This document shows positions 1 to 5,292 of a stretch of DNA of 5,292 nucleotides, in pieces. The translations under genes and the position numbers were made by a program. Below the pieces are notes generated by a model. The model searched no databases and was not told where the DNA came from. It was given only the letters and a program-made list of their open reading frames with translations. The stretch is from Geosiphon pyriformis uo1 (Eukaryota > Fungi > Glomeromycota): NCBI GenBank assembly GCA_016748015.1, contig JAAOMT010000216.1, positions 1 through 5,292 of the forward strand, in the 5' to 3' direction. Positions within the stretch are counted from its first letter, which is position 1. Each line of letters begins with the position of its first letter.

Positions 1-651
1 ATGACTGTGCTAATCGAGTAATTGAACAACAAATTCTGAATTGAATCATATGAAAATAGTTGTACAGATTCGGTAAAGCTGTTATTTGAATTCATAGTCT
101 TGAGGTGGAAACCAATATTTTATTTCTTAAGAAACCAAATCAATCATAAAGGATTTTTATTAATTAGTTTGCAAATGTAAATTAAAAGGATAAACGGTGT
201 CAGATCTTGTGAAGTAACAATTACGAATTTCGGGTTATATAGTTCACCTTAACTAAATCCAAATTTTCTTTAACGACAATATAGAAAAAACTTTTTAAGT
301 CAAAGATTTTTCATTTCCCAATCTATTTATAAGGATCTCGGTCAAAAACTTTTGTTCGCTTTTCGGTGACTTAATAATGGGAATTGTTGGCCGGTTTAAT
401 CCTTTAATTATTACAACAGTCTAAGTATGGATCAAAATTCAAATTTTTGATGATTGTTAGGTAAAAGTTGGAAATGCCCGTGAATCTTTATGATTTCAAC
501 AATGGAACTTTTTGAAAAACTTATCTTTAAAGCTTTAAAGTTAAGCACTATTCCCACCACCATATTGAATTGCTTTATATCGAATTCATTTTTGAAGCTT
601 TAAAACATTAGAAATTTTCATTAAAATTCATATTTTTCTGATTAAACTCAT
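1..651 (-). pseudogene. Decayed LINE ORF2 APE-endonuclease relic, running off the window start
   Basis: Minus-strand motifs occur in the expected order across frameshifts and stops: MSL (651-643); YKAIQYGGG then IVL after a 1-nt shift (YGGG 564-553; cf. GGGVAI); VIIKGLN (414-394; cf. IIxGDLN); KFLTEILIN; ENLDLV (268-251; cf. ILDL); SDTVYP (204-187; cf. SDHxP). Confidence 0.55.
520..545. repeat. 26-bp near-perfect palindrome with a perfect 16-bp core
   Basis: CTTAT-CTTTAAAGCTTTAAAG-TTAAG; the core (525-540) is (CTTTAAAG)x2 and self-complementary, with one mismatched pair in the flanks. Confidence 0.85.
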
Positions 652-1050
652 AGCATGAAAATACGAAAAAAAGCTCAACTGTATAGAATAATTTGAATGT
701 TGAAAAATAAAAATAAAATTTAAATGTAATTCTTGGCTTTTAATATTAGTGTGTTTTGTTTATTATAATATAATTTGAAACAGCTTATAGGTATTATTTT
801 CTTGTAAATATTTAATTAATAAAATATTTAAGTAATCATCTAAGGTTAAATGTATTAAAAACTTGGTATTTGATTATGCTAAAAGTTGAAATAATAATTT
901 TTCAATTACACATATAAGCTATTTAAATTGCAAAAAACATTTGCTAGAAACTTCCAATTTGGTTTTTGTATGAGTAAAATATTATACTTTGCTAAATATA
1001 TTGATTGATTTTTTTGGAACTATATTATGCAACATATTGTAAAAACTTTG

Positions 1051-1074
1051 AAATCAAATAAATTTATTTGATTT
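1051..1074. repeat. Perfect 24-bp palindrome
   Basis: AAATCAAATAAA|TTTATTTGATTT; extends to 1048-1078 with one bulged base. Confidence 0.9.
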
Positions 1075-1800
1075 TCAACCGATTGCCGCGGAATTAATCG
1101 CAAATTCAACCAATTAGTTTGGCAACAAAGACGTAGAAAGCTGGTAGCTATGACAATAGATTTTTTTAAACTAGAAATGGGGGTGGGAAGTACAAGTGTG
1201 CCCATGCATACGCCTTTGTGTATTGCATGCTGCAACTAGGGCAGAGATCCCAAGATGGGTGCCTAGTAAAAAAATATGTGAAATTTAAACTTTAGCTTAA
1301 AAATCTTTGTTACCGACCACATAACTGGGTGGAGGTTTGTTAGATCACTCAATGAAGCTTGGCATTAATCTTGATTTTTTTTTAAAAGAAATTAATAACA
1401 GATTGATATAACAAATATCAATTTATTTTACTCGAAGAATTGAATTTAAATCTTGCTCCTTTGAAGCTTCTAAAAGTTAAAGACGTTATTGTTTTAACCT
1501 ACATCCATAAGGAAATAATGATAACTGAAATATGCACCGTAACCTTTAAAAAGTATAACTTTGATTCAATAAATTAAATTTCGTTAATCTCATCTAATTT
1601 TCGAGGGGACAATACTTAAAGGAGAGATCATTCAAATTTTTAGAACACTGAAACTTAAAATCTTAAATTTTGATCTACATATCCGGCAAACTCTGATCAA
1701 GTAATTGTGCCTACAAATCTTAATTAATTCTCCAAATATGGAAAATTGGAACCAATTTTATTTCCTAATTCATGATGACAGCGTGTCATTAGTCTTGAAC
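1063..1800 (+). pseudogene. Decayed LINE ORF2 APE-endonuclease relic with part of the downstream linker (CR1/L2-like)
   Basis: Ordered motifs: TDCRGINRKFNQL (1078-1116; cf. NxRGIxxK); LVAMT (1141-1155; cf. IIAITE); RNGGG (1173-1187); CYRP (1308-1319, same frame as GGG and about 40 codons later; cf. YRPP); ITE..TVT (1521-1544; cf. ITEPTRVT); RDH (1623-1631; cf. SDH); IFRTLKLK (1636-1659); ENWNQFY (1741-1761; linker-like). Several stops and frameshifts interrupt it. Confidence 0.6.
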
Positions 1801-2749
1801 TGAACACAAAACATTGCAAATCTATTGTATCGATTATAAATTAGAAATAAAAAATTTGTGTACCATAAGTTGCTGACTTTTAGACCTCCGCTATAATTTA
1901 TACCCAGGTATTTTCAATTATGTACATTACAACTCTTTGAATTATACTATGTAGAATCTTACATTTTTAATAGTTATAAATTTCCAGCAATTTTTTTGAA
2001 AGTACAACTCAGGAAATATGCTTCCACCCAATACAGAATACAATTAAATGTTAAATATATATAAATTTTGAGAAATATAATAACAAAAGTAATCAAAGTT
2101 AAAAAATATTTAACAAATTTTAAAATTATAATTAAAATTCTAATAAATTTAATTTGAATTCATAATAAAATATTGTTTTGATAAAAATTGTATTCTTAAC
2201 AAATCAGCTAAAACTTAAAAATATGTTATAAACATAGTGTGCTTTCAGTGAATGAAAATTGTTTGAATTCTGTTTTTTACATTTGAAAAAAATTTAAAGA
2301 TTTTGTTAAAGTAATTCAATAAAGATCTGAATTAAACAATTAAATTTTTTTGACCACATTTTAAACACAACCAAAAATTAATTTTCAAATTTGGTATTAA
2401 ATTTTGAACCTAAAAATTTGATATTATAACAATTTTAGTAAAGGTTAACAGTTATTAAAGACAAACATTAATGCAAAAATTGCAAAAAATATTTTAATAC
2501 AAATTTTTTGTTTATTATTGTACAAAAAACATTATTATTAAAACTAAAATCACAAATCTTTAGTTTATTGATAACATTCAAATTATTGAAAAACAACAAT
2601 ATTTTTTAAAAACCAAATACATCAAATTTACCAAACAATGAAAAATGGCTAATAATACTAGCAATTCTGTTTGTGTTAATTATGAAGCTTAATACTTCAA
2701 ACAAATTTTATCTTTTTGAACAAATATTAAAAATTATATGGTGTTTAAT

Positions 2750-2787
2750 TGTTTTATTTTTGTTATTTTGTGTATTTTGTTTTATTG
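2750..2787. repeat. Low-complexity T-rich tract with TATTTTGT-like units
   Basis: tgttttatttttgttattttgtgtattttgttttattg. Confidence 0.5.
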
Positions 2788-3049
2788 ATAATTAATGTGA
2801 CATTGTGACTTAACAAAAACATATTGATATATTGTATTAATAAATAATATGCATTCTTATTACAATCGTATTAAGATGCTAGTTTATATGAGTAGATTTA
2901 CCAATAACTATAATAAAAACATTTATATTTAAAACACATAAAATTGGGATGTTTCAATTTTATCAATATGTGTTTTTATCCGCAGAGAACCGGAATATGT
3001 ATCGTCAACACGTGACTTCTCTGGTAAAGATCTACTTTTCTAATGAAAT

Positions 3050-3270
3050 AATCCCCAATGTTTTAGTTGATATTTTAAACTTCTTTAAAAAGTTACACAT
3101 TTTTAACTGTTGCTGGGAATTTAACCAAGTGACAATGATGAGTATTTGTTTTTTTGGCTTTTAGTAACCATAGAAAGTCAAAATTTTCTTAATTAGATTT
3201 TTGGTATAATCGATGGCAAAATGCTAAAAGGTCTGAAATTATCTTTATTCTTTATTTCATCTTGTTTTCG
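3050..3270 (-). pseudogene. Decayed LINE reverse-transcriptase N-terminal fragment
   Basis: The minus strand reads RKQDEIKNKDNFRPFSILPSIIPKI* (NFRP starts at 3240, stop at 3195-3193), resembling the non-LTR motif NYRPISLLxxxSKI. Weaker downstream echoes are YGY*KP (3172-3155; cf. QYGFR) and TLGI (3061-3050; cf. LGIFLD). The spacing implies internal deletions. Confidence 0.5.
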
Positions 3271-3979
3271 TAAATTTTTTCGAGAGATTAATAGTTTAAT
3301 TGATAATTTTTTTAATATTATAATATAAAAAATTTTTAATCCTATTCTTTTTTCGAGAATACCAAAAATATTTAATTAATTTTTTAATATGAAAATTAAA
3401 GGTTTATAATTATTTGTAAGTAAAATAACATCTTTTAAAAATTTTGAAATCTTTAAATATTTATTTTTCATTTTAGTATCTAATTGTAACATTATATTAA
3501 ATTGTTATTCTCAATTTTCAAAGTATTTAAATTCAACTTAAAAATAATAACAATTGAAAAATGTACAGTGGGGAGAGATGTCAAAAGTTTTCAAAAATAT
3601 TTCTATTTAATATAAAACTTCAAATGTATAATATCAATTACTGAATTGCCCAATAAAATTTTATTGTAATTAGTAAAAACTTTGCATTTTTTATTAATCA
3701 AATAATTTTTATTTGGATGTTATTACTGATTGAATTTGAGGATCTTATATCTATTAAATTTTTTAGTTTTTTAACAATTTGTTTTAGAATGTCAAAAACT
3801 GTTGTCAAACGGTCTCTGCTCTCCTGCAGTTAATTCTTTATTTCTTCTCATTTACAGAAATGCGTTGTAATAATGGTAAGTTTCGGATAAAAAAATAGAC
3901 CAATAAAATATTTCAATATATTAATTTTTTTGGGCAAACATATTATTCTTGTGTAATTACAAGCATTTTGAGCTATTTT

Positions 3980-4530
3980 AGCATATACAATATACATTTA
4001 AAAAAAAAGCTTCAAAAACTTTTGACAGTCTTTTGTATATTCACTGGCTGTTAAGAATCTAATTTAAATATTAATGATTTCAAAAGAATTTAAAACTTGG
4101 AAAAAATCAAAAGAGTAAAAATAAAGCAGCTCAAAATTTTAAAGATTTCAACAAATATTTATTTGAAAGACTCAAAATTTTTTGCCAGTGTTCAAAATTT
4201 TTGTTCAAATAATTATGAAAAGAGTGAATGACACAATTCTCGGGAAAGTTGACGTTGAAATAGACTAAATAGATGTATTTTTATTTGGTAGACATAAATG
4301 CTCGAATATTATTACTTTATTTTTGTCATATTTTCTCAGTTTGACAAAGGAAATGAATATTTTTATCGAGCACCTGGTTCAAAAAGTTTCATGGGCTATC
4401 TATTAAAAAAAAAAATTTTTGCTTTCAATAAATTTCTTTTAAATCATTAGTGTGACAGTATTTTTAAATTTTCTAATGAAAACCAGTCAAATTTTTGATT
4501 TGGATCCAGATTACCCTCACCTTTTTAAAA
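3980..4530 (+). pseudogene. Decayed LINE ORF2 APE-endonuclease relic
   Basis: Ordered motifs: SIYNIHLKKKL (3980-4012; cf. SWNIxGLxxK); FDSLLYIHWL (4021-4050; cf. FDIIxLxETWL); ESNLNINDFK (4055-4084; cf. LNIxGY); DVFLFG[+1 A at 4290]DINARI (4272-4308; cf. GDFNAR); FLSLTKEMNIFI (4332-4367; cf. LLxLCKxxNLxI); GSKSFMGYLL (4376-4405; cf. GxSxIDY); PDYP (4506-4517; cf. SDHxP). Confidence 0.68.
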
Positions 4531-4723
4531 AGAATTAAAATTGTTAAAACTTACAAATTTATAAAGTATTCAATCGAAATTTTATTCAAGTTTTTAACCC
4601 CTTTTTTTGAAGTAAATCTATTTCAGGAAAAAAGTCAATAACAATAGCAAGCGTGTATTGGGGTATAAAATTTTCAAATTTTTTTTATTTCATAAAGATT
4701 AGCAAAACAACTTTATCGTATGA

Positions 4724-4755
4724 CTGATAGAGGCAAGCCTCTACAGCCACTCTGT
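4724..4755 (+). mobile_element. GC-rich stem-loop resembling the terminus of a Helentron/DINE-1-like non-autonomous element
   Basis: CTG-A-TAGAGGC-AA-GCCTCTA-CAG has perfect 7-bp arms (4728-4734 and 4737-4743) and is followed by ccactctgtt. The minus strand reads AACAGAGTGGCT-GTAGAGG-CTTG-CCTCTAT-CAGTCATAC, which echoes the layout I recall for DINE-1/HINE ends. The hairpin is seen directly; the element identity is inference. Confidence 0.35.
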
Positions 4756-4845
4756 TGACAATAAGGGAAAATAATTCATAAACTAGCCACTCTTTGAACC
4801 TGAATTTAGTAGATTTTCCACTGTTCAAACTTCACTTTTCCAAAG

Positions 4846-4985
4846 TCTACTGCTTGTTATTAAGTTACCAGATTGCTCTTTGAATATCAGGAAAAGCTAG
4901 CCTTGAAGCTGGTTTCGACCGGCAAGCTACTATCACGATCGACTTGCTTGTTATTAAGAATCGTCAAAATATTGCCTTCTTGGAT
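4846..4985. repeat. Degenerate local tandem duplication (period about 94-100 nt)
   Basis: The exact 14-mer TGCTTGTTATTAAG occurs at 4851-4864 and 4945-4958. Similarity extends on both sides (tctac vs tcgact upstream; attgctctttgaat vs attgccttcttggat downstream). Confidence 0.55.
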
Positions 4986-5150
4986 GAAATCTTGCCCAGT
5001 AACTTGAAGAGTATTTGGCTGAATTAACCCTTGATATATCAATTAGGAATACCCAAAGTACTTTTTTTATTGCCGGGCTTCTTAGTTCTCTTTGGTTTGT
5101 AATATTGGACAGTTTAAAGTAAAGGTAAAGTATGGTAGCAAAAAAAAATT

Positions 5151-5169
5151 ATGTAAACAAATCTTCTAG
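5151..5169 (+). other. Probable 3' splice acceptor (phase 0) for the protease exon
   Basis: atgtaaacaaatcttcTAG|CTC AAC ATC. Recognisable protein similarity and the GC step both begin right after the AG, and the upstream sequence is A-rich. Nearby GT donors exist at 5125, 5130 and 5135, but the true donor cannot be determined. Confidence 0.6.
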
Positions 5170-5292
5170 CTCAACATCATTCAACATCCGAACGGAATGC
5201 CAAAGCAATTGGGCATTCGCGAAAATCAGTTGATTGACGTGCTCGATAATTTCATCCACTATAAAACCGATACAGCGCCGGGCTCATCAGGA
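5170..5292 (+). CDS. Partial coding exon of a trypsin-like serine protease (PA clan, Trypsin_2/V8-like, bacterial-type); continues past the window end
   Basis: 41 stop-free codons translate to LNIIQHPNGMPKQLGIRENQLIDVLDNFIHYKTDTAPGSSG. This matches the family pattern IIQHPxGxxK...HYxTDTxxGSSG, and the second Ser of GSSG (5287-5289) sits at the catalytic nucleophile position. GC is 56/123 (45.5%), well above the flanks. An in-frame TAG at 5167-5169 doubles as a 3' splice AG. Confidence 0.88.

Follow-up and report, generated by a model that had tools for sequence, protein, structure and literature searches.

The window analysed here is the whole of contig C242, 5292 bp in length, from a 128.3-Mb assembly of the fungus Geosiphon pyriformis comprising 792 contigs. 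A long AT-rich fungal block and a short terminal stretch of bacterial type meet in it, and the following features were located:

1..5171: AT-rich fungal block (24.8% GC), assembled three times at 100% identity, in contigs C242, C553 and C469
5167..5169, plus strand: TAG before the reading frame and in frame with it; fungal, also present in C553 and C469; TGG (Trp242) in the bacterium
5169..5171: switch point, GCT, a 3-nt overlap of the fungal sequence and the bacterial gene (three-way and pairwise alignment)
5172..5292, plus strand: bacterial tip of 121 bases with no second copy in the assembly; internal piece of a Trypsin_2 + PLD-like gene
5287..5289, plus strand: catalytic Ser codon, corresponding to Ser282 of the bacterial protein, in GSSG; an invariant column in the alignment of 40 relatives

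Translation of window:5170-5292:+ gives 41 codons without a stop, and the encoded peptide carries the motifs IIQHP, HYKTDT and PGSSG, as the first-pass annotation had described. Its figure of 45.5% GC was likewise reproduced for the last 121 bases of the window, compared to 24.8% in bases 1-5171. When the 41-aa peptide was searched against 1.84 billion representatives with phmmer, 827 relatives were obtained at E <= 1e-3 and 61 at E <= 1e-10. Given these relatives, the tip frame lies far above chance and its coding signal is real. A search of the 128-Mb assembly with the 959-aa bacterial protein described below scored the same frame at E = 5.6e-19.

The source of the tip was sought with a wobble-degenerate DNA pattern derived from the 41-aa peptide and run against a collection in which each bacterial and archaeal species is represented by a single genome. 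The sole match was in Chryseolinea lacunae strain Jin1 (Bacteroidota, Cytophagales, Fulvivirgaceae), on contig NZ_JAERRB010000012.1. Codons 1-41 of the window frame correspond to residues 243-283 of a 959-aa ORF of this bacterium with 41 of 41 amino acids identical, and the frame is then cut by the contig end at position 5292. At the DNA level, 109 of 123 nt are identical (88.6%); the 14 differences all fall in third codon positions and all 14 are synonymous, with 0 non-synonymous changes. GC3 is 54% in the window tip and 56% in C. lacunae. The second-best match among 40 genomes of Chryseolinea reached 76% at the nucleotide level, and a 401-genome sample of the family contained, apart from C. 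lacunae, no match longer than a 32-nt stretch. These comparisons point to a close relative of C. lacunae as the source of the tip and, because the nucleotide identity is 89%, to a strain or species other than the sequenced one. The exact source bacterium, identical at 100% of nucleotides, was absent from every collection searched, and we infer its presence in the sample. No source was found among JGI metagenome contigs with either an exact 40-mer or the degenerate pattern; the full-length protein search gave, as the next best after C. lacunae, a protein only 63% identical; a search with a 141-aa piece, intended for short fragments, yielded no source, its best match being 65% identical; and no source bacterium came up when the 41-aa and 32-aa peptides were looked up as exact products. 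The Nostoc symbiont, considered as a donor because of its similar GC content, was rejected, since the sole close match found is to Chryseolinea.

The tip matches the gene of a free-living organism and shows both a purifying-selection pattern and the composition of the donor, as expected of a chimera. The frame is intact because its sequence is that of a living bacterium's gene, to which it is identical in all 41 amino acids; its intactness, which had been read as a sign of selection or recent arrival, therefore lends nothing to a functional gene in the fungus.

The bacterial protein that contains the matching residues was characterized by its domains:

NZ_JAERRB010000012.1 (locus L008:4983-7862), minus strand: C. 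lacunae Jin1 ORF of 959 aa; the database version of the protein (P0151) has 939 aa
residues 145-296 of the C. lacunae protein: Trypsin_2 (75.1 bits, Pfam)
residues 789-919 of the C. lacunae protein: PLDc_2, PF13091 (86 bits, Pfam)

His160, Asp206 and Ser282 do not vary across 40 aligned long relatives, and the solved structures nearest to the protease domain by sequence are those of V8 protease and glutamyl endopeptidase (1wcz, 1qy6). The C. lacunae gene product is thus predicted to be a protein of ~950 aa that combines a V8/glutamyl-endopeptidase-like serine protease with a C-terminal PLD-family nuclease-like domain. The PLD part weakly resembles NucT and DrmC, far under the curated cut-offs, and the PADLOC and NCBIfam matches to DrmC, NucT and RT-Protease were also weak and under the curated cut-offs. 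The neighbours of the Chryseolinea gene are nitrate/nitrite-reductase-type, PD40-repeat and two-component genes. A defence-island context in Chryseolinea was considered and is unsupported, as the neighbours are not defence-like and the PADLOC matches are weak.

Fusions of ~950 aa that join Trypsin_2 to a PLD-like domain are common among soil bacteria, with 1683 proteins from many phyla at E <= 1e-50, and their source annotations read either 'V8-like Glu-specific endopeptidase' or 'phospholipase D-like domain-containing protein'. These proteins have the same architecture as the C. lacunae protein, but the best member besides it is only 63% identical overall. Among the 40 long relatives, the C-terminal module is Endonuclease_1 in 17, Endonuclease_NS in 6 and PLDc_2 in 5; further modules are Lipase_3 (2), Peptidase_S8 (2) and Metallophos (1). 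This module is thus interchangeable in the wider protease family. The layout of the bacterial family may be summarized as a conserved N-terminal region of ~140 aa, a V8-like Trypsin_2 domain, and swappable C-terminal modules (Endonuclease_1, Endonuclease_NS, PLD-like, lipase, subtilase or metallophosphoesterase), with the PLD form alone counting more than 1600 members. Two statements of the first-pass annotation were borne out by these data. The peptide had been assigned to the bacterial Trypsin_2 type, and it is identical in 41 of 41 amino acids to a protein with Trypsin_2 and PLDc_2 domains. Such proteases had also been said to be frequently fused to nucleases; the exact match is itself a Trypsin_2 + PLDc_2 protein, and the 17 Endonuclease_1 and 6 Endonuclease_NS modules among the 40 relatives agree with this.

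The window holds only a small part of such a protein. The 41 codons are identical to those of the C. lacunae ORF at the amino acid level, their DNA is 88.6% identical, and they differ from it only by synonymous third-position changes; yet they represent 41 of 959 residues and include neither the His and Asp of the triad nor the PLD domain. The fragment alone scored 15.8 bits (E = 0.025) against Trypsin_2 (PF13365), an S1-type serine protease domain, covering profile positions 84-131 of 144, and so missed the gathering score of the family (27.6 bits), in contrast to the full C. lacunae protein with its 75.1 bits. Because of this difference in score, the window piece is best regarded as a fragment of a Trypsin_2 member and not as a domain. 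Ser282 is the sole residue of the triad in the window, which leaves the triad incomplete, and the region with His160 and Asp206, which would lie upstream of the breakpoint, was not recovered from any part of the assembly when the 959-aa protein served as query. The same search of the whole assembly recovered nothing but residues 242-283, with no upstream exon and no downstream remainder. The window stops with its contig at residue 283 and so does not reach the PLD-like domain, which the rest of the assembly lacks as well. No other Trypsin_2 match and no match to SusD_RagB, a marker of Bacteroidota, occurred in the assembly; on these grounds the tip counts as an orphan, rather than belonging to a bacterial contig that was kept. 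The lack of His160, Asp206 and all other protein parts from both window and assembly, together with the lack of any other Trypsin_2 match in the genome, counts against a functional transferred gene. Judged by its sequence, the fragment cannot encode a protease here, whatever its origin, and would do nothing in the fungus.

The boundary of the tip was defined by a three-way alignment of the window, C553 and the bacterial gene. The window is identical to C553 through ...TTCTAGCT (position 5171) and to the bacterial gene from GCTCAAC... (position 5169) on. An exon edge had been placed at 5169/5170, directly after ttctAG; this placement does not hold, as the fungal identity reaches 5171 and the bacterial match already begins at 5169. 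The ttctAG taken for an intron end is native fungal sequence found in C553 and C469, and the bacterial gene has TGG (Trp242) at this point. The TAG at 5167-5169 is therefore not a dedicated splice acceptor. The AG belongs to a fungal TAG common to C553 and C469, the bacterial homology starts inside that TAG, and the assembly contains no upstream exon; the proposed spliceosomal intron is not supported. For an intron-bearing transferred gene, the remainder of the gene would be expected on host DNA, and it is not there.

The fungal part of the window is redundant in the assembly. Window positions 1-5171 are 100% identical to C553:320512-325682 (minus) and to C469:1-5171 (minus). The last base of contig C553 (325,682 bp) corresponds to window position 1; the first base of C469 (307,247 bp) corresponds to window position 5171, and C469 extends beyond window position 1. 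In the orientation of the window, the chromosome order is C469, then the 5171-bp block, then C553 downstream. C553 crosses the junction uninterrupted into ordinary AT-rich fungal DNA. No second copy of bases 5172-5292 was found in the assembly at either the DNA or the protein level, and no reciprocal junction was found in it; the C553 sequence on the far side occurs only once. The junction is accordingly neither the sole assembled state, as C553 reads through it, nor paired with a second junction, as would be expected of a transferred segment. The foreign part lies at the contig end and the remaining contig is redundant with C553 and C469, which is the arrangement of an assembly chimera. The redundancy of C242 except for its tip is a further point against a functional gene, and the claim that a eukaryote had acquired the protease finds no support in a 121-bp tip on a redundant contig with an unameliorated composition and no rest of the gene.

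The surroundings of the frame had been described as LINE relics, which could not be confirmed: none of the window's four ORFs of at least 50 aa matched Pfam at E <= 1, and an Rfam search of the window was likewise negative. Dispersed repeats with many copies at 70-90% identity across the assembly were found at window positions 1840-2200, 2484-2600, 3287-3474 and 3845-4006. Because it contains these dispersed repeats of the Geosiphon genome, the block 1..5171 is native to the fungal genome.

The two large contigs, C469 (307 kb) and C553 (326 kb), remain separate in the assembly, with an end-to-end overlap of 5171 bp at 100% identity, and could probably be merged. Next to C242, the small contigs C241 and C243 were found to be single copy and not duplicates, and for this reason the pattern of C242 is a local accident and not a general property of the assembly. 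The GC content of the single-copy contig C243:1-5110 (L016) is 46.7%, compared to a mean near 29% for the genome; its ORF at 287-4843 (+) encodes an uninterrupted 1518-aa copia-type polyprotein (RVT_2, gag, pre-integrase). The contig may represent a young element, or it may come from another eukaryote present in the sample. C241:1-5921 (L015), likewise single copy, spans 5.9 kb with 44.8% GC, a composition atypical for the genome, and contained no ORF of at least 150 aa and no Rfam match. In C240:1-5441 (L017), 4499 of the 5441 bases are N, which marks a gap or withheld sequence.

Taken together, the sequence identities, the contig topology and the missing remainder of the gene suggest that the tip is very probably a gene fragment of a Chryseolinea-like soil bacterium that became linked to fungal DNA as an artefact, within a chimeric molecule or read; the order of events proposed here is reconstructed from them. 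Such a molecule would have arisen during library preparation or amplification of the non-axenic sample, with fungal sequence up to 5171 and bacterial sequence after it. Being mostly fungal, it could survive decontamination at both the read and the contig level, and it would then make the assembly graph fork spuriously at 5171/5172. At this branch the assembler would leave the true neighbours C469 and C553 unjoined despite their 5171-bp overlap and emit C242 as the block plus the 121-bp tip. The spurious branch would account for the stop of C469 at the junction, for the other end shared by C553 and C242, and for the threefold emission of the block. Purely bacterial reads able to lengthen the tip would be discarded by filtering, which would keep it short. 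The first-pass annotation had itself raised the case of a chimeric assembly with a bacterial contaminant, and this is what the assembly topology indicates.

The published description of the data is compatible with this sequence of events. The Geosiphon pyriformis assembly has been given as 129 Mb in 795 scaffolds (PMC9453076). The pipeline in that paper consists of metaSPAdes assembly, CONCOCT tetranucleotide binning and removal of bacterial bins, after which reads mapping to the contigs that were kept are recruited and re-assembled, and the result is cleaned contig-wise with tblastn (PMC9453076). According to this sister paper, the same k-mer-binning approach was used for the G. pyriformis genome, and the binning 'as described previously [16]' refers to the Geosiphon genome paper (doi 10.1016/j.cub.2021.01.058). 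A pipeline of this kind would be expected to keep a mostly fungal chimeric read and to truncate the bacterial sequence beyond it. At the level of the assembly, chimeric-read or contaminant tips in non-axenic assemblies resemble the present case in the foreign part at the contig end and the redundancy of the rest, in the graph break exactly at the junction and in the contig-wise decontamination.

Of the alternatives, a genuine but non-functional integration by microhomology end joining, present in a minority of nuclei or in one haplotype and captured at one junction, fares best, and we nevertheless consider it unlikely. The 3-nt microhomology at the junction fits NHEJ/MMEJ as well as template switching, read filtering of this kind would leave the same lone junction if a minority of nuclei carried an insertion, and the cleaning pipeline would cut a real insert to a tip of about a read length. 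Against these points, C553 passes through the site uninterrupted, and only one junction exists, with neither its reciprocal nor any further bacterial sequence in the assembly. There is also no compositional amelioration, the differences from C. lacunae are synonymous only, and the donor is a free-living soil bacterium and not a known endosymbiont of Geosiphon.

Horizontal gene transfer from bacteria to Glomeromycotina has been reported for the endobacteria of these fungi. The present locus resembles such transfers in that a bacterial-type coding sequence adjoins fungal DNA. It differs from them in having no complete gene, second junction, amelioration or endosymbiont donor, and in that an uninterrupted allele is assembled in the 326-kb contig C553. 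Although it can call on the 41-codon open frame, the AG just before it and the bacterial family of the peptide, a functional protease (or protease-nuclease) gene acquired by transfer, with a spliceosomal intron ending at 5169 and kept by selection, is exceedingly improbable and is already contradicted by the identity with C553 and C469, the whole-assembly protein search and the three-way alignment.

The original observation is thus real and its family call right, and the horizontal-transfer reading is unsupported. With a chimeric molecule or read as the preferred explanation, the value of the finding is that of a flag for quality control and curation, and the biological claim does not stand. 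C242 merits a flag as redundant, with a bacterial tip of 121 bp, and may be dropped. Screens for horizontal transfer in this assembly, and in others that were cleaned contig by contig from non-axenic samples, should examine whether a candidate lies at a contig end and whether its contig is redundant before a transfer is called. If the integration were genuine after all, the junction would be a snapshot of a very recent, unameliorated and non-functional capture of bacterial DNA in a multinucleate Glomeromycotina fungus. Independent of the window, the family of V8-like proteases with nuclease, PLD or lipase modules is widespread and may merit study in bacteria.
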